From: Octopus sinensis
Lineage: Eukaryota
Reading direction: 5' to 3'
NCBI RefSeq assembly: GCF_006345805.1
Contig: NC_042997.1
Location: forward strand, 171,430,001 to 171,494,000
DNA: 64,000 nucleotides
Each line of letters opens with the position of its first letter. Positions within the stretch are counted from its first letter, which is position 1. The notes beneath the pieces are model-generated. The model was given only the letters and a program-made list of their open reading frames with translations, had not been told where the DNA came from and did no database searches. A program made the translations under genes and the position numbers. Of the stretch, positions 48,560-64,000 are shown one piece after another.

Positions 48560-50790
48560 AATTTTCCTTATTTCTTGCCAGGTGTCTGTATCATTGGTAG
48601 GCCATTAAAATAAACACACCGGATTGTTCATTTAGAAAGTCATGTGATAGAGAAAAAGGGAAAAATAAAGAGGTAAGCTAAGAAAATAAAGGGGAAAAAA
48701 AGGAAAGAAAATTTACAACGACAATGCTCTTCTCAGTACATGCAATGAATCAGTTAAGACAATCTTTTGTACTTCCTGCATGGATGGTACACCAGGGATG
48801 ATTCTTAAATAATTTCCAGTTCCATTTTTGATCATTCCAAGTGCTCCTACAGTCACTGGTATTGTAACCGTCTTGAGATGCCACATCTTTTCAATTTCAA
48901 TTGGCAAATCTTTATATTGTCTGAGTTTATCAAATTCTTTTGCCGAGATATTATGCTCACAGAGTATGCTCATGTCAATCAATAAACAAGCTTTAATGTT
49001 TTGGTTTTTCACAACAATATCTGGTTTATTTGCTTTGATGGTTCAGTCTGTACATAAACAAGCTTTAATGTTTTGGTTTTTCACAACAATATCTGGTTTA
49101 TTTGCTTTGATAGTTCAGTTTGTACATACCTGAAAGTCTCAAAGAATAGTTACATTTTCTCTCTCAGTTACAGCCTCAGGGTGGTGCTTGTACCATTTGT
49201 CAACAGCTTTGATTTTATATTGCCGACACATTATCCAATGTGGATATTGGCCAACTGTCATGTCTTAATTTGTACTCTACAGGTGCTAAAACCTTACACC
49301 TAAAGATTAGGTGGCCCACTGTTTCTATCCCATCATTGCAGTATTGGAACTTTGGGTCTATTCCATTTTTCATCAAACTGGCTTGATATTTCCATGTCAA
49401 TAACCTCTAATCTTGAGTAGCCAAGATAAAACCTTCACTCTCTTCCTTTAGGCCTGAGCTCTGTAGCCACTGATGGGTCTGCTTCAGGTCTACATTAGCT
49501 TGTTTGTTATGGACCACATATTTGCATGCTGAGGCTTTTGTTCCCACTTATCAGCCAATTATTCAAACGCATTTTGTTTTGCTATTGATTTCACCTTCTT
49601 TGCAACTACACTTGAAAATTTTTTTGCTTTCCTTCGTAAGAGAATGAAGCTTATTTCTTTCATAAGTTTCAACAAACTTTAACATCCAATTGTTAGATGT
49701 TTCAAGATATTTTGCCAGTCCAATAGCTCTGGGTAGGTAAAGATGATCTGCATCTGCCTTTGGGTGGTGCATCTTATTGCAAGTCAGCAGCTTACAAATT
49801 TTCGTGTCAATCTTCCTTATTTCACTCATATTCCAGTTCAACACATTGAAACTGTAAATAACAACTGGAACTGCTAAAGAATTTATAGCCAACACCTTGT
49901 TATGTGAATTTAATTCGGATTTTAGGACTGCTCAAACTCTCCTGTCACATTCCTTCCTGATCTTCTCTTTCATGCTTGATGCTGAATGCCAGAGCCCTAA
50001 TTTATTCCGAGGTATTTGTAAGTTTGTTCCTGCTCAAGTTCTTTTATGTCTGTGTCAACATCTAACACCACTGAATGTGAGGTCTTCAATTTACCTTCCT
50101 GGAAAGTGGCTTTGGCACATTTATCAAAACCAAATTCCATCCAGATGTCATCACTGAATGCTTTTACAATATGTAGTAGTCCTTTAAGCTCATTATCACC
50201 TTTGCCATAGAGTTTTAAGTCATCCATATAAAATAGATGACTTATTTTCTTGTCACCAATTTTATATTCATACCCTGTTCTGTTAAGGTCACTTGAAAGG
50301 CGTATTACGGCTCTACAGAAAATTAAAGGTGAAAGTGAGTCACCTTGGGAAATGCTGCAGTTAATATTAATATTTTTTGTGGTCAGTACTCCATTAGAGT
50401 GATATAATTGGGGATTTGTATTCCACATTGACATATTGTGCTTCAGGAAGTTTGAAATCATAGGAGAAATTTTGAAGATATCCAGCAATTTCAAGATGCT
50501 TGAATGCAGTATGTTGCCAAAGGCCATTTTATAGTCAATCCATGTGGAACTGAGATTTCTGCATTTGTTATAACAGTTCTCAAGGATCATGCGATTTTGC
50601 ATCCATATGAATCTCACTGGCACCCTTTTTCTTCAGTGGGGAAAATATTGTTCTGTTCCATAAATTTATGTTTTCTCCATGAGGATGGATGTTGAAGTTT
50701 TATACGTAGTAGATAGACATGTTATAGGTTAATAGTTTTGGGAAAATTTTGTTTCATTATTCTGCAAGAGGTAAGTAATACCTCTTGCTA
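48560..50790 (-). mobile_element. 5'-truncated, frameshifted Dong/R4-clade (RLE) LINE
   Basis: RT motifs SQGDSLSPLIFC and HLFYMDDLKLY; CCHC-like QYCNDGIETVGHLIFRC; RLE tail LLIDMSI...KYKDL/QYKDLxIEIEKMWHLKTVTIPVTVGALG. The 3' end abuts (ATT)n. Confidence 0.9.
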
Positions 50791-52139: not shown

Positions 52140-52940
52140 ACATGATTAGAGAAAAAGAGGGAGACAGAAAAGAGAGAGAGAAAAAAAGAAAGGGGAAAAA
52201 GAGGGAGGGAGAAAAAGAGGGAAGAAGAAAAAGAGGGAGGGAGAAAAAGTGGGAGAGAGAAAAGTGGGAGAGAGAAACATCCATAATGTGAAGTAGAGAG
52301 AATGTAATTGTAATGCTTCCATATGATTGGTTGAAGGGAAAGAGAGGAGAGAGAAAAAGGAGAGAGTGAAAAAGAGGATAAGGCGAAGGGTGAAAGAGGG
52401 AGTAAGAGAAAGAGGTAGAGAGAAGCATCCATGACATGAGGTAGGGGGAATGTAATATCTACTATGTGGTTAAAAAAGTTAGTTGAAAGTAAAGGAGGAG
52501 AGTTAAAAATACTGTTTTAGCAGAGGTATGATATTTTGATGGTAAGATTAAAGAAAGGCACAGAGAGAGAGAGAGGAAGAGAGAGAGAGAGGAGAAAGAG
52601 AGGAGGGGAAGAGAGAGGAGAGAGAGAGGAGAGAGAGAGAGAGAGGAGTGAAAGAGAGAGGAGAAAGAGAGGAGGGGAGAGAGAGGAGAGAGAGGGAGAG
52701 AGAGAGAGAGAGAGGAGTGAAAGAGAGAGGAGAGGAGAGAGAGGAGAGAGAGAGAGAGAGGAGAAAGAGAGGAGGGGAAGAGAGAGGAGAGAGAGAGGAG
52801 AGAGAGAGAGAGAGGAGTGAAAGAGAGAGGAGAAAGAGAGGAGGGGAAGAGAGAGGAGAGAGAGGGAGAGAGAGAGAGAGAGAGAGGAGTGAAAGAGAGA
52901 GGAGAGGAGAGAGAGGAGGAAGGGAGAAAGAGAGAGATGG
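52140..52940. repeat. Polypurine (GA-rich) tract with higher-order units
   Basis: Mostly A/G on the plus strand (broken by a mixed stretch at ~52400-52550); gagagagaggagtgaaagagagagg recurs several times. Confidence 0.9.
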
Positions 52941-53138
52941 TGATGGTGATGGTTGTAGTGGTGGTGGTGGTGGTGGTGGTGATTGGATAGTAAAAAGTGT
53001 AGTTTTTTAAAGAATTGAACTAATTTTTTTTTTTATATCACCTATCACTTAATGCATGTGCGTAAGTGCAATTCCATGAAATATTCAAGATTATTTGCAT
53101 GGCAGATATATGCAATTTAACTAAAGGTTGTATCATAT

Positions 53139-54403
53139 TGTTACGGAATCACCCGTCGTCGCCCGTCCCGAACGGCTCACACAAGTTCCGCCACGGAACC
53201 CAAAGAGGCGGAGAGAGGAGATACAGATAGATACTGCCACAACCTCAACAGCACAGAGATACAGAGGCACAACCCGAGATACAACCCAAAGAGGCAAGGC
53301 AACAACTGGCAACACTGGCTTATATTCAAACAACAGTTTATACGACAATTACAATGGTTACAACATCAAAGCATTTAAGGCAAACAACAAATCAATACAT
53401 CATACGGTATACCACAGATCAAAGCATTTAACAACATGCATATAACAATATAACAGTGTTCAGTAACGACACAACAAGTCCAGATCAAATAATGTTCACG
53501 ATACGTCACAGTCCAATCAGAACACTTCGATACATTATACAATGTTCGTATCACAACAATTCACGTTACAATTCAACAAGTCCTTTACTCAATTCACAAT
53601 GTTCTTTATCGACTACATCGACAGAGTCCTTCTTTTTCTCTCTTCTTTCTCTTCTTTTCTTTTACATCGTGACACGTATCAATACACAATCACATACCTT
53701 AATTCCTAACTGAATCGCCAGTGTCCCATTCTGCACTCATCCCTCAATGCTGCCAAATCCAGCCTGCCAAACTCCTGCATCCCAACTTGCTTGCTCCTAA
53801 GTTTCCACCTACTCGCTCTGATTTCCAGAATCCGACTGTCCTTCTTCGACGACCGACTCCAACTCCAAGATCCGTCTGTGTTCCTCGACGACCGCTCAAC
53901 GACTGCCCTTCTTGACGACCAGCTACCAATTACACAGATCCGTCCTTCCTGACGACCAACTGCGAACTACCAGACCTCACTTCGTCTCTGTCCTTCTTCC
54001 ACTCCCCTCATCTCCCTCTGTCTATATCGCTCTTACCCTTTCTAACTGCCCTGGTCCTTATACCCTATCTATATCGCCTGCTGTCTCTTAGCCTTTCTAT
54101 TTGCTATCTGATTCCTTACTCTATCTATATCACCTGCTGTCTCTTAGCCTCTCCATCCGTCCCCTACTGCTTATACTCTATCTCTATCTGCTCTCAGATT
54201 CCCTTAATCTGTCTTCCTCTTCACTTCTTCACTGACCCTTTCTCGACCGGCACAAGGGCAAAGGTCCTTCCAAAACCCATTAGTCCTCCATTAGACAAAA
54301 GACTGTCACATTTTCACCAGACATGATGGTGCCATTATTCCTATGTGGGTCAACAGAAACACTACACTAATTAAACCCGAAATGCACTTAGCCAACCGTA
54401 ACA
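53139..54403 (-). repeat. LTR copy 1 (3' LTR of the element), 1265 bp
   Basis: TGTTACGG...CCGTAACA; adjacent to the PPT on its internal side; near-identical to LTR2 and LTR3. Confidence 0.93.
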
Positions 54404-54416
54404 CTACCCCCTACCT
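54404..54416 (-). promoter_or_regulatory. Polypurine tract (AGGTAGGGGGTAG) abutting LTR1
   Basis: Purine-rich tract immediately 5' (minus strand) of the TG of the LTR. Confidence 0.8.
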
Positions 54417-54518
54417 AAGCTTTTGTCGACCCGACAAAGCATAACAAAACTCGCACCTCCGAGCAGCAGACTCTCCAGGGGCTGGGGGTTCCCTTGGGTG
54501 GTTTCTCCTCCGGGGGTC

Positions 54519-56339
54519 TCACCTCCCACGGCACCACTTCAGCACCAGCCACAGGTTGGCACCTTCCCTCTGCGGCTTGGGTAACACCTCCGCCAACGCC
54601 ACCAGGCTTCCTACTAGCCGCCCACAATAGGCGCACTGTCCAAGGAAGTTCCTCAAATCCCTCACACAAGAAGGGTCCGGCCAATCCTTCACAGTGGCCA
54701 TCTTCCTCAGGGCTCTATAGCCCACGTAGCATCTTGCTGTACCATCTCCATTCCGCGCAATTATCGCCGACGACCAGGGACCATTCCGCTTTTCCACTGT
54801 TCCCCGTCGCCGATATCTCCTCTTGCGCTGCTGTACGGAGACCTTCCTCCGGCCTCGCTGCTTCCTCAAGCGACAACCGCCCTGGTCGACGAAACATTCT
54901 GCCAGGTCCGTGCGACCAGCATCCAACAACCCTCGCGACCAACGTCCTGCGCTCTTCACCAATGGTTGCTTCTTCCGCAACTGCATCAGCGGACCACGAT
55001 CTCCCTTAACTTCATCACTGCACCGGCAGAACTGACCCCGCCGCTGGTTTACCGTCTGGCGCAGTACCACGATTTGCCCTCTGCAAATCGCCTGCGCAGC
55101 CTTCAATAAATCGGCCGACCCACCCAGCGCTCTGTCAGCCTCTGCCTCCACCAGGGTCCAGCCGACCCTCAATTGAGTTCCTATTCCGCACTGCATGTCG
55201 GGCTCCACCGGCCCCACGCAACCATCGAGCACAGCGCTCCCCCAAGTGCCAACAAAGCACCAGCAACTCCTTGCGGACCGCTTCCTCAACTGCATCCGTG
55301 GGCCACCACCTCCTTCAACTGCGTTGCCGTATCGGCAGAGCTGGCCCCACCACTGGTTCGCCATCTGGCACGATTCCTCGATTTGCCTTCTGCAAATCGC
55401 CTGTGCCACTTCCAAAAGATCGGCCGACCCAGCCAGCGCTCCACCAGCTTCTGCTTCCACTAGGGTCCACCCGACCCTCAATCGAGCTTTCACTAGGCAC
55501 TGCCTGTCGGGCTCCACCGGCCCCAAGCAACCATCAACCACAAAGCTCACCCAACGCTGAAGCAGTCTTCCTGGACTCGGTGGACCCACCACCGTTCGCA
55601 GCCGTCTCGCCTCGTCAACGGGCCTGGTCCTTTTCCTCACCAGCTTCCGTACCGCAGGCCTCACAACACGCACGCTCGGCCGCCAGTCCATCCACGCCTG
55701 TGGCCTCTCCACAGTGGGAACCATACAGTCCCTCTGGGCCCCAAGAGACAGGGGTCCAGACACCAAAGGACCCGCACACGGCATAGCACCTGCCGCGACC
55801 ATCACACACAGAGCCGGAACCTCGGACTCAGCGACATTCGCCCCAGACCTTGCCAGCTCTTCGTCCTGAGCTCCGAGAGACAGGGGTCGAGATGCCAAGG
55901 GCTCCAGACACGGAACAACAGCATCAGCTATAACACCTTCCACAGGCCTTTTGGTTACTTCAACCTCTACGGGTTCCAAATCACAAGATTTCTTGGGTAC
56001 AGCGTCACAAATTTCGGCAACCAGCCCAGGTTCCGCAAACACAGCCGGTCCAGCATCACAGATTTCGGCAACACTTCCTTCACTATCTGTTTCCCTCGAT
56101 GCTTCGTTCGACGGGCAGTTTCTGCCCACAGGACCGTCGCTATCCCTGGTCCAACACCGATCCTCCAAAGCTGACCCATCCGCAACCTCAAGCTCCCGCT
56201 GATCTGCCCACAGGCCCTGTCGCCTCTCGTCCATCCTTTCCATGAACGCATCCGTCTGCGCCATCTGGCCCCTTAACATCTCCACAATCAGGGCAAGCGA
56301 AATCCCCTCGTCTCTGGTCTGACAGCCAGACAAATCCAT
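54519..56339 (-). CDS. Second copy of the ORF (606 aa from ATG), C-terminus altered by a 1-nt deletion
   Basis: Translation is identical to the other copy until LVLKW. The sequence is CACGGCACC at ~54527-54535 versus CACGGCCACC at ~57787-57796. Confidence 0.6.
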   Translation of the reverse strand: MDLSGCQTRDEGISLALIVEMLRGQMAQTDAFMERMDERRQGLWADQRELEVADGSALEDRCWTRDSDGPVGRNCPSNEASRETDSEGSVAEICDAGPAVFAEPGLVAEICDAVPKKSCDLEPVEVEVTKRPVEGVIADAVVPCLEPLASRPLSLGAQDEELARSGANVAESEVPALCVMVAAGAMPCAGPLVSGPLSLGAQRDCMVPTVERPQAWMDWRPSVRVVRPAVRKLVRKRTRPVDEARRLRTVVGPPSPGRLLQRWVSFVVDGCLGPVEPDRQCLVKARLRVGWTLVEAEAGGALAGSADLLEVAQAICRRQIEESCQMANQWWGQLCRYGNAVEGGGGPRMQLRKRSARSCWCFVGTWGSAVLDGCVGPVEPDMQCGIGTQLRVGWTLVEAEADRALGGSADLLKAAQAICRGQIVVLRQTVNQRRGQFCRCSDEVKGDRGPLMQLRKKQPLVKSAGRWSRGLLDAGRTDLAECFVDQGGCRLRKQRGRRKVSVQQRKRRYRRRGTVEKRNGPWSSAIIARNGDGTARCYVGYRALRKMATVKDWPDPSCVRDLRNFLGQCAYCGRLVGSLVALAEVLPKPQREGANLWLVLKWCRGR

Positions 56340-56376
56340 AGCGAAAAAGAACCGATCGAAACGCAGCAATCAGGAC

Positions 56377-56395
56377 AATCCCACTTCTGACACCA
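56377..56395 (-). promoter_or_regulatory. Second copy of the tRNA-Leu PBS
   Basis: Identical 19-mer, 2 nt from the LTR2 end. Confidence 0.9.
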
Positions 56396-56397
56396 GT

Positions 56398-57663
56398 TGT
56401 TATGGCGGAATCACCCGTCGTCGCTCGTCCCGAACGGCTCACACAAGTTCCGCCACGGAACCCAAAGAGGCGGAGAGAGGAGATACAGATAGATAATGCC
56501 ACAACCTCAACAGCACAGAGATACAGAGGCACAACCCGAGATACAACCCAAAGAGGCAAGGCAACAACTGGCAACACTGGCTTATATTCAAACAACAGTT
56601 TATACGACAATCAATTGCTACACATCAAATACATTTAAGGCAAACAACAAATCAATACATCATATGGTATACCACAGATCAAAGCATTTAACAACATGCA
56701 TGTAACAATATAACAGTGTTCAGTAACGACACAACAAGTCCAGATCAAATAATGTTCACGATACGTCACAGTCCAATCAGAACACTTCGATACATTATAC
56801 AATGTTCGTATCACAACAATTCATGTTACAATTCAACAAGTCCTTTACTCAATTCACAATGTTCTTTATCGACTACATCGACAGAGTCCTTCTTTTTCTC
56901 TCTTCTTTCTCTTCTTTTCTTTTACATCGTGACACGTATCAATACACAATCACATACCTTAATTCCTAACTGAATCGCCAGTGTCCCATTCTGCACTCAT
57001 CCCTCAATGCTGCCAAATCCAGCCTGCCAAACTCCTGCATCCCAACTTGCTTGCTCCTAAGTTTCCACCTACTCGCTCTGATTTCCAGAATCCGACTGTC
57101 CTTCTTCGACGACCGACTCCAACTCCAAGATCCGTCTGTGTTCCTCGACGACCGCTCAACGACTGCCCTTCTTGACGACCAGCTACCAATTACACAGATC
57201 CGTCCTTCCTGACGACCAACTGCGAACTACCAGACCTCACTTCGTCTCTGTCCTTCTTCCACTCCCCTCATCTCCCTCTGTCTATATCGCTCTTACCCTT
57301 TCTAACTGCCCTGGTCCTTATACCCTATCTATATCGCCTGCTGTCTCTTAGCCTTTCTATTTGCTATCTGATTCCTTACTCTATCTATATCACCTGCTGT
57401 CTCTTAGCCTCTCCATCCGTCCCCTACTGCTTATACTCTATCTCTATCTGCTCTCAGATTCCCTTAATCTGTCTTCCTCTTCACTTCTTCACTGACCCTT
57501 TCTCGACCGGCACAAGGGCAAAGGTCCTTCCAAAACCCATTAGTCCTCCATTAGACAAAAGACTGTCACATTTTCACCAGACATGATGGTGCCATTATTC
57601 CTATGTGGGTCAACAGAAACACTACACTAATTAAACCCGAAATGCACTTAGCCAACCGTAACA
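56398..57663 (-). repeat. LTR copy 2 (shared middle LTR), 1266 bp
   Basis: TGTTATGG...CCGTAACA; flanked by a PBS on one side and a PPT on the other. Confidence 0.93.
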
Positions 57664-57676
57664 CTACCCCCTACCT
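57664..57676 (-). promoter_or_regulatory. Polypurine tract abutting LTR2
   Basis: Identical tract; the ORF stop codon (TAG, 57675-57677) overlaps its start. Confidence 0.8.
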
Positions 57677-59600
57677 AAGCTTTTGTCGACCCGACAAAGC
57701 ATAACAAAACTCGCACCTCCGAGCAGCAGACTCTCCAGGGGCTGGGGGTTCCCTTGGGTGGTTTCTCCTCCGGGGGTCTCACCTCCCACGGCCACCACTT
57801 CAGCACCAGCCACAGGTTGGCACCTTCCCTCTGCGGCTTGGGTAACACCTCCGCCAACGCCACCAGGCTTCCTACTAGCCGCCCACAATAGGCGCACTGT
57901 CCAAGGAAGTTCCTCAAATCCCTCACACAAGAAGGGTCCGGCCAATCCTTCACAGTGGCCATCTTCCTCAGGGCTCTATAGCCCACGTAGCATCTTGCTG
58001 TACCATCTCCATTCCGCGCAATTATCGCCGACGACCAGGGACCATTCCGCTTTTCCACTGTTCCCCGTCGCCGATATCTCCTCTTGCGCTGCTGTACGGA
58101 GACCTTCCTCCGGCCTCGCTGCTTCCTCAAGCGACAACCGCCCTGGTCGACGAAACATTCTGCCAGGTCCGTGCGACCAGCATCCAACAACCCTCGCGAC
58201 CAACGTCCTGCGCTCTTCACCAATGGTTGCTTCTTCCGCAACTGCATCAGCGGACCACGATCTCCCTTAACTTCATCACTGCACCGGCAGAACTGACCCC
58301 GCCGCTGGTTTACCGTCTGGCGCAGTACCACGATTTGCCCTCTGCAAATCGCCTGCGCAGCCTTCAATAAATCGGCCGACCCACCCAGCGCTCTGTCAGC
58401 CTCTGCCTCCACCAGGGTCCAGCCGACCCTCAATTGAGTTCCTATTCCGCACTGCATGTCGGGCTCCACCGGCCCCACGCAACCATCGAGCACAGCGCTC
58501 CCCCAAGTGCCAACAAAGCACCAGCAACTCCTTGCGGACCGCTTCCTCAACTGCATCCGTGGGCCACCACCTCCTTCAACTGCGTTGCCGTATCGGCAGA
58601 GCTGGCCCCACCACTGGTTCGCCATCTGGCACGATTCCTCGATTTGCCTTCTGCAAATCGCCTGTGCCACTTCCAAAAGATCGGCCGACCCAGCCAGCGC
58701 TCCACCAGCTTCTGCTTCCACTAGGGTCCACCCGACCCTCAATCGAGCTTTCACTAGGCACTGCCTGTCGGGCTCCACCGGCCCCAAGCAACCATCAACC
58801 ACAAAGCTCACCCAACGCTGAAGCAGTCTTCCTGGACTCGGTGGACCCACCACCGTTCGCAGCCGTCTCGCCTCGTCAACGGGCCTGGTCCTTTTCCTCA
58901 CCAGCTTCCGTACCGCAGGCCTCACAACACGCACGCTCGGCCGCCAGTCCATCCACGCCTGTGGCCTCTCCACAGTGGGAACCATACAGTCCCTCTGGGC
59001 CCCAAGAGACAGGGGTCCAGACACCAAAGGACCCGCACACGGCATAGCACCTGCCGCGACCATCACACACAGAGCCGGAACCTCGGACTCAGCGACATTC
59101 GCCCCAGACCTTGCCAGCTCTTCGTCCTGAGCTCCGAGAGACAGGGGTCGAGATGCCAAGGGCTCCAGACACGGAACAACAGCATCAGCTATAACACCTT
59201 CCACAGGCCTTTTGGTTACTTCAACCTCTACGGGTTCCAAATCACAAGATTTCTTGGGTACAGCGTCACAAATTTCGGCAACCAGCCCAGGTTCCGCAAA
59301 CACAGCCGGTCCAGCATCACAGATTTCGGCAACACTTCCTTCACTATCTGTTTCCCTCGATGCTTCGTTCGACGGGCAGTTTCTGCCCACAGGACCGTCG
59401 CTATCCCTGGTCCAACACCGATCCTCCAAAGCTGACCCATCCGCAACCTCAAGCTCCCGCTGATCTGCCCACAGGCCCTGTCGCCTCTCGTCCATCCTTT
59501 CCATGAACGCATCCGTCTGCGCCATCTGGCCCCTTAACATCTCCACAATCAGGGCAAGCGAAATCCCCTCGTCTCTGGTCTGACAGCCAGACAAATCCAT
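57675..59600 (-). CDS. 641-aa (from first ATG) gag-pol-derived ORF lacking catalytic cores
   Basis: Open from just after the PBS to the PPT. It carries a degenerate zinc knuckle (CWTRDSDGPVGRNC, CX2[R]X4[P]X4C) and an RT N-terminal remnant (GPWSSAIIARNGDGTARCYVGYRAL, cf. SPWSSPxVLVxKKDGxxRFCVDYRxLN). This is fused directly to an RT thumb/connection remnant (WPDPSCVRDLRNFLGQCAY, cf. WPxPxxxxxLRxFLGLxxYY). No YxDD, DSG/DTG, RNase H or DDE motif was seen. Confidence 0.7.
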   Translation of the reverse strand: MDLSGCQTRDEGISLALIVEMLRGQMAQTDAFMERMDERRQGLWADQRELEVADGSALEDRCWTRDSDGPVGRNCPSNEASRETDSEGSVAEICDAGPAVFAEPGLVAEICDAVPKKSCDLEPVEVEVTKRPVEGVIADAVVPCLEPLASRPLSLGAQDEELARSGANVAESEVPALCVMVAAGAMPCAGPLVSGPLSLGAQRDCMVPTVERPQAWMDWRPSVRVVRPAVRKLVRKRTRPVDEARRLRTVVGPPSPGRLLQRWVSFVVDGCLGPVEPDRQCLVKARLRVGWTLVEAEAGGALAGSADLLEVAQAICRRQIEESCQMANQWWGQLCRYGNAVEGGGGPRMQLRKRSARSCWCFVGTWGSAVLDGCVGPVEPDMQCGIGTQLRVGWTLVEAEADRALGGSADLLKAAQAICRGQIVVLRQTVNQRRGQFCRCSDEVKGDRGPLMQLRKKQPLVKSAGRWSRGLLDAGRTDLAECFVDQGGCRLRKQRGRRKVSVQQRKRRYRRRGTVEKRNGPWSSAIIARNGDGTARCYVGYRALRKMATVKDWPDPSCVRDLRNFLGQCAYCGRLVGSLVALAEVLPKPQREGANLWLVLKWWPWEVRPPEEKPPKGTPSPWRVCCSEVRVLLCFVGSTKA

Positions 59601-59637
59601 AGCGAAAAAGAACCGATCGAAACGCAGCAATCAGGAC

Positions 59638-59656
59638 AATCCCACTTCTGACACCA
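59638..59656 (-). promoter_or_regulatory. Primer-binding site complementary to the tRNA-Leu(CAA) 3' end
   Basis: Minus strand reads LTR-AC-TGGTGTCAGAAGTGGGATT. The plus strand AATCCCACTTCTGACACCA matches the 3' end of metazoan tRNA-Leu(CAA) including CCA. Confidence 0.9.
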
Positions 59657-59658
59657 GT

Positions 59659-60924
59659 TGTTATGGCGGAATCACCCGTCGTCGCTCGTCCCGAACGGCT
59701 CACACAAGTTCCGCCACGGAACCCAAAGAGGCGGAGAGAGGAGATACAGATAGATAATGCCACAACCTCAACAGCACAGAGATACAGAGGCACAACCCGA
59801 GATACAACCCAAAGAGGCAAGGCAACAACTGGCAACACTGGCTTATATTCAAACAACAGTTTATACGACAATCAATTGCTACACATCAAATACATTTAAG
59901 GCAAACAACAAATCAATACATCATATGGTATACCACAGATCAAAGCATTTAACAACATGCATGTAACAATATAACAGTGTTCAGTAACGACACAACAAGT
60001 CCAGATCAAATAATGTTCACGATACGTCACAGTCCAATCAGAACACTTCGATACATTATACAATGTTCGTATCACAACAATTCATGTTACAATTCAACAA
60101 GTCCTTTACTCAATTCACAATGTTCTTTATCGACTACATCGACAGAGTCCTTCTTTTTCTCTCTTCTTTCTCTTCTTTTCTTTTACATCGTGACACGTAT
60201 CAATACACAATCACATACCTTAATTCCTAACTGAATCGCCAGTGTCCCATTCTGCACTCATCCCTCAATGCTGCCAAATCCAGCCTGCCAAACTCCTGCA
60301 TCCCAACTTGCTTGCTCCTAAGTTTCCACCTACTCGCTCTGATTTCCAGAATCCGACTGTCCTTCTTCGACGACCGACTCCAACTCCAAGATCCGTCTGT
60401 GTTCCTCGACGACCGCTCAACGACTGCCCTTCTTGACGACCAGCTACCAATTACACAGATCCGTCCTTCCTGACGACCAACTGCGAACTACCAGACCTCA
60501 CTTCGTCTCTGTCCTTCTTCCACTCCCCTCATCTCCCTCTGTCTATATCGCTCTTACCCTTTCTAACTGCCCTGGTCCTTATACCCTATCTATATCGCCT
60601 GCTGTCTCTTAGCCTTTCTATTTGCTATCTGATTCCTTACTCTATCTATATCACCTGCTGTCTCTTAGCCTCTCCATCCGTCCCCTACTGCTTATACTCT
60701 ATCTCTATCTGCTCTCAGATTCCCTTAATCTGTCTTCCTCTTCACTTCTTCACTGACCCTTTCTCGACCGGCACAAGGGCAAAGGTCCTTCCAAAACCCA
60801 TTAGTCCTCCATTAGACAAAAGACTGTCACATTTTCACCAGACATGATGGTGCCATTATTCCTATGTGGGTCAACAGAAACACTACACTAATTAAACCCG
60901 AAATGCACTTAGCCAACCGTAACA
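59659..60924 (-). repeat. LTR copy 3 (5' LTR of the element), 1266 bp
   Basis: Appears identical to LTR2 by eye; outer end followed by the ATAT TSD. Confidence 0.93.
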
Positions 60925-61059
60925 ATATGTATAGGATATTTATTTTGTTTATGGGAAAAATGGAAAAATAAGAGTGAATATATATTTTACGAGCACTGTG
61001 TTTTAAGTCTATAAAATTGTATATAAGTATATAAAATGTATAAATAAAATGCATAAAGT

Positions 61060-62130
61060 AATCATCATGAGTAGCAGATGAGTGACTATCTTCCCATACA
61101 GACACATAACAGGCTACGCTTTCAGGTTGTTTGGATAAAGTTCTCAGAAATAACCCAATAGGTTTACCTTTAATTCTGTGAAATATCCATGGGTCCCGCT
61201 AGTTATTACTATTATGCTGGTGCATGCTAATTTAGTTAGCAAGTATTTTGTCTTGCAGTCTGGTAACAACAAGTCTCCTCAAATCTCAGGAATTTTCTAA
61301 GGATCCTTGTAGAATATAGTATGGTAATTTTCAGCAGGTCAACCTTGAGAGTTTCAATTCCAATTTCTATCAGTCTTTTTGGTAGCATTTTGGGTGTTGT
61401 GCCAAATGCACCTATTATTACAGGAATAATTGTAATCTTGGTCTTCTACAATCTCCTTAGTTCTCTAGCTAGATCCTGTTATTTCTTATTTTTTTCCATT
61501 TCTCTGGAATCAATTCTGTTATCATAGGGAATTGCAAAATATGTAATCTTGTATTGTTTGTTTATTTTGTCCTTTATAATTCTGTCTGGCCTTCTTGCTT
61601 CAATAGTATGGCCAGCCGTTATGGCAAAATCCCACCAGATCTTGTAACTCTCATTGGTTCGTGCTCATACCTCTTTCCTGTTGTTTTGAAGCCACATACT
61701 CAACTAAGAATCCAATGCACTCTTTTGCCTACAAACTCATGCCTGTGCTTGTATTCTTTTTGTGCTACTACACTGCACTCACTCAAAAGATGAATGATAC
61801 TTTCATCACCTTTTCTACAGATTCTACATTTGCTGTCTGACTGAGTTTTGTTGATCTTTGCTTTATCAGGTTTATTCTAAGGGCTTGTTCCTGAGCAGCT
61901 GTAATTAGTCTTTCTGTTTCTCATTTCAAATTCCTGTTGGTCAACCAAAGCGGGCTTTACTTTACTGGCAATTGCACCTTTGTATGTCCATAGCTTGCTC
62001 TAGGTACACAAGTATGGAATTTCTACCTCTACCTTTTCTATACATCAAGCAGGATCATTTTCTTGAAGGAAGCAGAATCCCATGTTTTCCTACATATTAG
62101 GCCTTTGGTCTTTGCTAGGTTAACTTTAAG
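61060..62130 (-). mobile_element. Dong/R4 LINE 3' fragment
   Basis: Reverse strand reads CRICRKGDESIIHLLSECSVVAQKEYKHRH (CCHC) and IPVIIGAFGTTPK...STRILRKFL. Confidence 0.8.
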
Positions 62131-63169: not shown

Positions 63170-64000
63170 CTCTTATTATAAAAGGCAGATTTTATCTGCC
63201 TCCCTTTGGGAGTTATACAAATCTACAATATAGGATTTCTTCAATTACAATTTACCCAGCATTTTTAAGAGTACAATGCATCGCGTCATGCCAGGTCCAG
63301 TTTTTAAAATTTAAACTCCAATTAAGCAAAATTTACAGAAAACTCACATTCTGGTGTGTGTGTCAAATGCTTTTCTTAGTCTGGTTTACACCACACGCAA
63401 ATGCACACACACAGTGGGCAACGAATAAAATGAAAGTAAATAGCGACAGAGTGATTTGAGGAAGACTAAAGTGAAAGTATTCTGTCTATGACGCTGATAG
63501 ATACATGAGTAAAATGTATGGGAAGCTAAGAGCTAAGAGTGAGTGAAAATGTTCTTGGAAGAGAGTAAATAGCGAGAGAGAGAGTGATTTGAGGAAGACT
63601 TTCATTAAATAACCGTAGTGGCTTGTGTTAGTAATAAAGTAAACATACACTCATACATACATACATACATACATACATACATACATACATACATACATAC
63701 ATACACACATACACACACACATACATACACACACACATACATACATACACACATACATACATACATACATACATATACATACATACATACATATACATAC
63801 ATACATACACACACACACATACACACACACACAGTATTGAAGCTTGAGAACAATCAGATACATTTGCAACACATCTGTTGAAAATATTATTGTTCACACA
63901 CATACATATACATATATACATACAGACAGACAGATAGACACACACACACACACATGATCCAGCATGGCCACAACCTCAAGGCTGAAACATATAAAAGAAT

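Follow-up and report, generated by a model that had tools for sequence, protein, structure and literature searches.

Introduction

Non-autonomous long terminal repeat (LTR) retrotransposons are usually seen as non-coding passengers or as decaying wrecks. Some defective families multiply with the proteins of a related autonomous element, as illustrated by BARE2 and BARE1 in barley or by ETn and MusD in the mouse. The parasite-helper pair BARE2/BARE1 is also cited in PMC13570524, which describes the plant TR-GAG elements as LTRs, a primer binding site (PBS) and a polypurine tract (PPT) around a single enzyme-free open reading frame (ORF); these elements are non-autonomous and occur as families that include recent copies. 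Of 115 families in sugar beet, 43 still carry gag/protease or decayed pol remnants, and decayed pol remnants are found in 15 of the 115 (PMC13570524). Tandem LTR-internal-LTR arrays occur as well, and the partners of non-autonomous families are often untraceable (PMC13570524, and its reference PMC7215508). Here, we analyse a stretch of 64,000 nucleotides of the Octopus sinensis genome (contig NC_042997.1, positions 171,430,001 to 171,494,000; “the window”), which harbours an LTR retrotransposon with a single ORF of 641 codons that occupies almost its entire internal region.

In our assessment this ORF is probably (at roughly 0.6) the coding remnant of a non-autonomous, Ty3/Gypsy-derived family of Octopus LTR retrotransposons, the frame of which has been kept by selection. 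The octopus lineage would then have lost every enzyme and kept one continuous frame through up to 29% divergence, with measurable selection for the frame as well as for a portion of the protein. If true family-wide, this provides a concrete case for asking what a retrotransposon parasite must encode itself.

A Single Open Frame Spanning the Internal Region

The mosaic gag-pol ORF is intact and lies on the minus strand (57675..59600, stop included), with its ATG at 59600 and a TAG at 57677-57675. It occupies 1926 of the 1995 bp of the internal region, beginning 38 nt past a putative PBS and ending inside the purine-rich tract directly ahead of the next LTR. A first-pass annotation of the window had described a frame of this extent, and its coordinates were confirmed; the strand, which it had not given, is the minus strand. 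An in-frame TTG located 10 codons upstream of the ATG is the start in the bacterial-code ORF list.

The sense strand contains 38.5% G and approximately 20% each of A, C and T. With this composition, stops are expected at about 4% of random codons, and according to our own arithmetic the probability of 641 open codons is near 1e-11; the frame is therefore not open by chance. The longest open stretch in the remaining sense frames within the internal region comprises 94 codons. Antisense ORFs of 171-195 codons lie opposite the 641-codon ORF (57683-58270 and 58532-59047, plus strand) and occur again in unit 1 of the array; the simplest account of these is that the antisense strand is C-rich and hence contains few stop codons.

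A Mosaic of gag and pol Leftovers

The encoded protein is a mosaic built from leftovers of gag and pol, which are arranged colinearly in Ty3/Gypsy order. A Pfam search with the ORF protein yielded no family at E up to 10, and the sole sequence match in the PDB was the Ty3 reverse transcriptase (RT)/RNase H (4OL8), which aligns in two blocks (query 520-557 with RT 97-135, and query 545-583 with RT 274-312). Since a word-index protein search returned just one octopus protein each for the whole ORF and for its last 191 residues, an exhaustive HMMER search over 1.84 billion representatives was needed. This search produced 136 matches, about 20 of which are fragments of the same octopus family, while the rest (about 120) are long Gypsy pol proteins that align to residues ~450-575 and ~545-595 as two separate stretches. 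Three long matches were analysed with Pfam: P0025 and P0028 contain RVP, RVT_1, RT_RNaseH_2, RT_RNaseH, Integrase_H2C2 and rve, and P0020 contains RT, RNase H and integrase zinc-finger domains. By pol relatedness the ORF thus belongs to the Ty3/Gypsy lineage, as evident from the 4OL8 match and from the complete Gypsy-type pols P0020, P0028 and P0025.

The alignment with P0025 locates the major deletion. Residues 459-546 correspond to P0025 253-345, where RVT_1 comprises 328-487, and residues 546-583 correspond to P0025 499-536. Compared to this relative, about 154 residues, i.e., nearly all of RVT_1, are missing between the RT start and the thumb, and the crab element at locus L005 reveals an equal gap of 154 residues at the DNA level. 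At the junction, the RT start ending in YRALRKM is fused to the thumb beginning with ATVKDWP. Downstream, the homology stops where RT_RNaseH_2 begins in the relatives. The RT core, RNase H, integrase, the active-site region of the protease and the capsid domain have been lost, and one module occurs in duplicate. The order protease (PR)-RT-RNase H-integrase (IN) with intact catalytic cores, which characterizes an autonomous member, is lacking, and the order of the relics fits PR-RT.

From the N-terminus onwards, the following pieces are discernible, all encoded on the minus strand. A long helix at residues 15-55 (59436..59558) is the most constrained segment of the protein and is modelled by AlphaFold with a predicted local distance difference test (pLDDT) score of 84-97. 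A weak hhalign match, in which 25 residues align with the capsid region of a Gag from a crab (E = 0.087), is a lead only, and the N-terminal profile gave chance-level matches only against the PDB. The helix is followed by a decayed CCHC zinc knuckle at residues 62-75 (59376..59417), which kept the spacing, while 2 of the 4 ligands are replaced (C-WT-R-DSDG-P-VGRN-C, pattern C-x2-R-x4-P-x4-C). The octopus family members P0015 and P0101 retain 3 of the 4 ligands, and the crab protein P0139 harbours at the matching place an intact knuckle (C-WT-C-x4-H-x4-C), which likewise begins with C-W-T. Residues 202-265 (58806..58997) represent a relic of the C-terminal end of the protease and the following linker, according to the alignment with P0024 and P0072 (phmmer query 231-316/333). 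Next come the two units of the post-protease module, the first (58542..58815) homologous to the single module of autonomous relatives and the second (58233..58506) missing in the copies L004 and L006. The two units comprise ~274 nt each, start 309 nt apart and are 79% identical, and the module is present once in the relatives and twice here.

The pre-RT linker and the start of RT as far as the deletion junction (residues 450-546; 57963..58253) are assigned by homology to P0025. The linker is strongly basic (residues 489-513); residues 481-520 include 16 K or R and carry a net charge of +13. The thumb relic (residues 547-600; 57801..57962) is joined straight to the RT start and precedes a C-terminal tail without detected homology (residues 601-641; 57678..57800), which differs between copies. 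Variable as the tail is, the frame stays open to 0-39 nt from the LTR in the four full-length copies. A second small duplication in the ORF consists of two 16-residue segments, PCLEPLASRPLSLGAQ and PCAGPLVSGPLSLGAQ (59127-59174 and 58995-59042), which lie 44 residues apart in the acidic half of the protein.

The protein is predicted to be mostly disordered and has an acidic first half and an arginine-rich stretch. The AlphaFold model, built from a 15-row alignment, has a mean pLDDT of 43.7, and the N-terminal helix is its only confident part. A Foldseek search of the model against the PDB gave no match at E up to 0.001. In view of the low mean pLDDT and the lack of a Foldseek match, we draw no conclusion about the fold beyond the N-terminal helix.

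Most of what the first-pass annotation had read from the letters was borne out by these comparisons. The fragments indeed follow retroviral gene order, and all pieces it had named were recovered through the 4OL8 match, the HMMER matches and the alignment with relatives. The proposed fusion of two RT blocks with a loss of roughly 150 residues including YxDD agrees with the junction and with the gap of ~154 residues in complete relatives; the knuckle of CX2CX4HX4C spacing with two replaced ligands and the duplication inside the ORF were found as well. The claim that no protease, RNase H or integrase core is recognisable holds for RNase H and integrase and requires amendment for the protease, the C-terminal relic of which can be recognised.

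Copies of the Family in Octopus Genomes

In total, 12 copies were compared: two units in the window and ten other octopus loci, of which O. vulgaris contributes nine, spread over eight chromosomes, and O. sinensis one, located on a contig. The ten loci were reached through predicted gene models, and the family fragments in the protein libraries are gene models of O. vulgaris and O. sinensis. Compared with the window ORF, the copies are between 96.5% and 71% identical, i.e., up to 29% divergent. Within a copy, the two LTRs share 96-99.8% identity, and two of the window LTRs match at 100%; therefore, several subfamilies were active recently. The absence of enzymes, the 11 further copies and the young LTR pairs characterize a non-autonomous family.

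The full frame is kept in 4 of the 12 copies, namely in window unit 2 (641 codons from the ATG), L002 (637 codons), L008 (631 codons) and L009 (614 codons). In L002 as in L008, two small frameshifting indels offset one another. One frameshift is present in each of window unit 1, L001 and L011, two frameshifts are found in L006, and L003 has two internal stops and no frameshift. L010 carries one frameshift and one stop, and its 5' end is incomplete; L004 and L007 are partial with several breaks. The RT junction is common to all copies that cover the site, including the most divergent one, L004. Given that copies up to 29% divergent contain this junction, the frame is not a fresh accident.

Some copies deviate in their architecture. 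L004 (13798-15127) contains a single post-protease module, the RT-core junction and, after the thumb relic, a relic of the integrase zinc finger. These features point to stepwise shrinking, and L004 looks like an earlier stage of the deletion series. In L007 (3970-6699), the internal region is reduced to ~770 bp with the first third of the ORF only, and the LTR pair is 96% identical.

At least nine O. vulgaris gene models start with the first 120-185 codons of the ORF spliced to unrelated host exons (P0001, P0003, P0004, P0009-P0014, P0150; L001 10001-26315), e.g., those of RING/Death-domain or choline-transporter-like proteins. These models could be LTR-driven chimeric transcripts or artefacts of gene prediction. 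We rejected them as evidence for expression, as they may be products of gene prediction on coding-like sequence. Gene predictors pick up this G+C-rich open frame, which therefore contaminates cephalopod proteomes.

Evidence for Selection on the Frame

Several comparisons among the copies concern the frame itself. Indels in the ORF, scored in 11 copies against the window copy, comprise 27 in-frame and 16 frameshifting events (63% multiples of three). In the LTRs of the same elements, multiples of three account for 3 of 16 indels within elements and for 21 of 135 indels between copies (16-19%); the difference is significant against both the within-element control (Fisher p = 0.003) and the between-copy control (8e-9). 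L003, which is 19% divergent, differs by six indels, all of which are multiples of three.

Stop codons are also rarer than expected. As 4.2% of single-base changes in the ORF would make a stop, ~15 stops are expected among the 356 differences between the window copy and L003, compared to two internal stops and an earlier frame end (about five-fold rarer). Given the open window copy, ~7.5 stops are expected on the L003 side alone, which makes the result weaker, though its probability is still low (about 0.02-0.06). In L003, L008, L009 and L011 the expected stops are lacking also outside the gene models that led to these copies.

At the level of the protein, the ratio of replacement to silent substitution rates (omega) was estimated with a pairwise codon model that incorporates transition bias and codon frequencies, using shifted frames as controls. 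Nei-Gojobori dN/dS values of 0.47-0.73 were replaced by this model because the transition/transversion rate ratio kappa is 4-9. In the true frame, omega is 0.62 for the window-L003 pair (likelihood-ratio 13.5, p = 2e-4) and 0.50-0.74 for the other divergent pairs, with 0.66 and 0.67 among these values; the closest pairs yield 0.8-0.9, which is not significant. When the reading is moved to either shifted frame, these alignments produce values of 1.0-1.7. Constraint is not evenly distributed: omega is ~0.3 for codons 1-58 (p = 0.005-0.007), 0.5-0.6 for most other segments and 1.1-1.4 for codons 348-450, which mostly represent the second repeat unit. Pairwise comparisons among the copies share history. 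A further test counts variants per codon column and employs no inferred ancestor or consensus.

In this test, variants present in at least two copies comprise 37 silent and 48 replacement changes, while private variants comprise 32 silent and 96 replacement changes (Fisher p = 0.007). The ratio among private variants, 32:96, equals that expected without constraint. The shifted frames lack the contrast between shared and private variants and contain 20-23 stop variants versus 3 in the true frame. Together, these results suggest that purifying selection operated while the family propagated, both on the frame and, to a weak degree, on the sequence of the protein. The selection that the first-pass annotation had suggested, either on a new non-enzymatic protein or on translatability as such, thus gains support from the in-frame indels, the stop deficit, omega and the shared/private contrast, and the support is greater for a protein than for bare translatability. 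None of the specific roles it had offered, i.e., a helper-parasite factor, a dominant-negative factor or NMD avoidance, is supported by these data.

Architecture of the Tandem Array

The ORF resides in a tandem array of the structure LTR-internal-LTR-internal-LTR, which extends over 53139-60924 on the minus strand and corresponds to 2.4 repeats of a 3261-bp unit. In the sense of the element, the array begins with the 5' LTR (1266 bp, 59659..60924, TGTTACGG...CCATAACA), followed at a distance of 2 nt by the putative 18-nt PBS, which starts with TGG (59639..59656). The internal region of array unit 2 (57664-59658) contains the 641-codon ORF and terminates with the polypurine-rich tract that holds its stop codon (57664..57683). 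The middle LTR, common to both tandem units (56398..57663), is identical to the 5' LTR at 1266 of 1266 positions. The second internal region (array unit 1, 54404-56397) harbours the second copy of the ORF (54415..56339), identical to the 641-codon ORF except for one frameshifting 1-bp indel, which is the sole difference between the two internal regions. The 3' LTR (1265 bp, 53139..54403, TGTTACGG...CCGTAACA) differs from the 5' LTR by 14 mismatches and two small indels. All these features lie on the minus strand.

The three LTRs (1265-1266 bp) have TG..CA ends, start with TGTTACGG and finish with TAACA, and in the 3' LTR an 8-bp terminal inverted repeat is formed (TGTTACGG/CCGTAACA). The target-site duplication ATAT directly abuts the outer LTR ends, upstream in the element sense at 60925..60928 and downstream at 53135..53138. 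Direct LTRs with TG..CA ends and a 4-bp target-site duplication identify the element as an LTR retrotransposon. Identical 5' and middle LTRs, a 3' LTR that is ~1% apart and internal regions one base apart suggest that one LTR-plus-internal unit was duplicated very recently, or that the pattern arose during assembly. The 18-nt PBS occurs exactly in four other copies, two of which have LTRs without a blastn match to the window LTR. No tRNA genes were detected in the window or in the fetched loci, so that the tRNA-Leu named for the PBS in the first-pass annotation is a putative assignment. Rfam yielded no match at E up to 0.1 in 52500-61500.

The element stands out by its composition, with 50-63% G+C within a genome of 30-40% G+C. 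On the sense strand, G greatly exceeds C over the whole element including the LTRs (GC skew of -0.2 to -0.5 on the plus strand versus ~0 in the flanks); the high G+C content and the excess of G over C are also found in the copies L001-L011. Between copies, A/G mismatches are 1.5-2.3 fold more frequent than C/T mismatches, and composition accounts for part of this only; the excess may be a strand-specific mutational signature of an RNA stage. A GA-rich microsatellite is located ~170 bp from the 3' LTR (52336-52967), and an ACAT/AC microsatellite 2.7 kb beyond the 5' LTR (63607-63976).

Relatives and Search for a Helper

The nearest autonomous-type relatives in the libraries belong to the decapod crustaceans Petrolisthes cinctipes and Homarus americanus and share 30-48% identity with the octopus ORF. 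The close autonomous-type relatives P0018, P0024, P0026, P0038, P0138 and P0139 and the locus L005 include no mollusc. The lack of a molluscan relative of this type may be due to repeat masking in mollusc annotations or to an unusual history. Within the window, a 208-codon ORF (49997-50623, minus strand) matches RVT_1 with E = 1e-16 and looks like a fragment of a LINE-type RT. It was rejected as a partner of the element, as it is of LINE type and bears no similarity to the Gypsy pol set.

Alternative Explanations

Several observations weigh against a frame maintained by selection on its product. At least one break is present in 8 of the 12 copies, and all copies outside the window were reached by way of predicted proteins, a route biased towards open stretches. 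The frame is weakly constrained, and the amino-acid sequence of its second repeat unit appears neutral. The structural model is poor overall and without a fold match, and hence, a folded functional protein is not evident. Neither the window nor 258 kb of fetched octopus DNA nor the annotated proteins yielded an octopus element with a complete pol. Finally, the ORFs are 89-96% identical between copies, whereas the LTRs in the same comparisons are 70-84% identical; this gap may mean that a single internal cassette was spread by recombination, in which case the frame would have had to survive for less time. Recombination with a coding parent, combined with biased sampling, is central to the proposal that no selection was involved and that an in-frame deletion derivative simply spread fast and recently, the apparent constraint being a by-product. 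Several copies are indeed very young (LTR pairs 99-100% identical), the closest pairs show an omega of 0.8-0.9 that does not differ from 1, the copies were found through gene models, and internal regions are far more alike than LTRs. We nevertheless deem this explanation quite unlikely, because the RT junction is common to copies that are 19-29% divergent, in-frame indels prevail in the ORF (63%) and not in the LTRs of the same copies (16-19%), the stop deficit in L003, L008, L009 and L011 extends beyond the gene models used to find them, and the shifted-frame controls are devoid of constraint. The tandem array with two identical LTRs is a structure that assemblers can create, and the first-pass annotation had named an assembly collapse as a finding that would overturn its interpretation. 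That the missing domains result from a collapse or mis-join has a negligible probability: the same architecture and RT junction recur at 10 loci on at least nine chromosomes or contigs of two independently assembled species, which excludes an artefact of this kind.

Selection might also act on translatability alone, if ribosomes must cross the internal region, e.g., to prevent decay triggered by an early stop, and the peptide itself plays no role. In agreement with this notion, the frame covers the entire internal region, starting 38 nt past the PBS and reaching into the PPT, the C-terminal tail varies among copies and yet is open to 0-39 nt from the LTR, the second repeat unit remains unbroken in the open copies at an omega of ~1.1-1.4, and most of the protein is predicted to be disordered. 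Yet, frame-keeping predicts neither a depletion of amino-acid changes that is restricted to the true frame nor an omega of ~0.3 for codons 1-58. Moreover, judging from LTR anatomy, the stop codon is followed by U3 and R of the 1.27-kb LTR, and thus, a short 3' untranslated region would not be gained. We consider this explanation unlikely. Gag-derived restriction factors are established in mammals, namely Fv1 in the mouse and enJS56A1 in sheep, and by this precedent the ORF might encode an interfering Gag-like factor directed against the helper or related elements, which is kept because host or parasite gains from damping the helper. The retention of a Gag-derived helix along with the loss of all enzymes would suit such a factor. 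Fv1 and enJS56A1, however, are single fixed host loci, whereas the octopus ORF is found in many recent insertions with LTRs and target duplications; furthermore, most copies are decaying, and no capsid domain is detectable by Pfam, which renders this option very unlikely. A host-domesticated Gag-derived gene is ruled out by the LTRs, the target duplication and the many unrelated, often broken loci.

A Possible Route to the Mosaic Protein

In this Ty3/Gypsy derivative, successive deletions removed the capsid domain, the active-site region of the protease, ~154 residues of the RT core, RNase H and the integrase, and one post-protease module was duplicated. The leftovers still form one frame from just past the PBS to the PPT. 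Under the favoured reading, i.e., a non-autonomous element with a selected frame, and since no enzyme is encoded, the element would be copied only with the proteins of an autonomous element. Element lineages with an RNA that is translated into the mosaic protein may leave more copies. As the most likely mechanism, we propose that this protein acts on its own RNA during translation and would link it to the particles of the helper. As a secondary benefit, translation across the whole internal region might stabilise the RNA.

Read in this manner, the family represents a parasitic lineage of long standing, in which a mostly disordered protein is under weak purifying selection. We put forward more tentatively, and with considerable doubt, that this lineage turned gag/pol scraps into a new, mostly disordered hitch-hiker protein with a Gag-derived helix, an acidic half and an arginine-rich stretch, which steers the RNA of the element into helper particles and is kept by element-level selection. 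The element would then constitute an animal equivalent of plant TR-GAG that goes one step further.

Comparison with Known Systems

The closest relatives of the pol-derived part are the decapod Ty3/Gypsy elements of Petrolisthes cinctipes (P0024, P0026, P0038, P0138, P0139) and Homarus americanus (P0018), which are colinear with the octopus ORF at 30-48% identity. The resemblance begins with the position of the second CCHC knuckle and the end of the protease and continues through the post-protease module and pre-RT linker to the RT start and thumb. In contrast to the octopus ORF, which harbours none of these domains, their family contains complete RVT_1, RT_RNaseH and rve.

As in the pairs BARE2/BARE1 and ETn/MusD, a defective element family would be copied by the proteins of a related autonomous element. 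The helpers of BARE2 and ETn have been identified and have LTRs or internal sequence in common with them, whereas no helper was found for the octopus element in the window, in the fetched octopus DNA (258 kb) or among annotated proteins; the internal region of ETn, moreover, is non-coding, unlike that of the octopus element. Cassandra, Helenus and Ajax carry 5S rRNA-, tRNA- or other small-RNA-like sequence in the LTR (PMC10886601). The octopus element is not of this type, since it has no Rfam match, tRNA-like gene or small-RNA-like LTR insert.

The families with decayed pol remnants, the large retrotransposon derivatives (LARDs) and the terminal-repeat retrotransposons in miniature (TRIMs) are, like the octopus element, deletion derivatives; they depend on a helper, as the octopus element would, and tandem arrays occur among them too. 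Families with decayed pol are characterized by fragmented ORFs and patchy, partly decayed domains (PMC13570524), whereas the octopus element features one continuous frame under measurable purifying selection. With TR-GAG, it shares LTRs, a putative PBS and PPT, a single enzyme-free ORF, non-autonomy and recent copies. TR-GAG, however, keeps a recognisable Gag, while the octopus ORF matches no Gag family in Pfam and retains only a weakly matching helix and a decayed knuckle; furthermore, its frame joins leftovers of gag, protease and RT, and the host is a cephalopod rather than a plant.

The suggestion of the first-pass annotation that the element represents an undescribed system is not supported, as plants are known to harbour non-autonomous LTR elements that retain gag or remnants of a decayed pol (PMC13570524). 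The octopus family differs from the documented kinds in that its ORF has no recognisable Gag domain, its remnants are joined in one continuous frame and selection on that frame is measurable.

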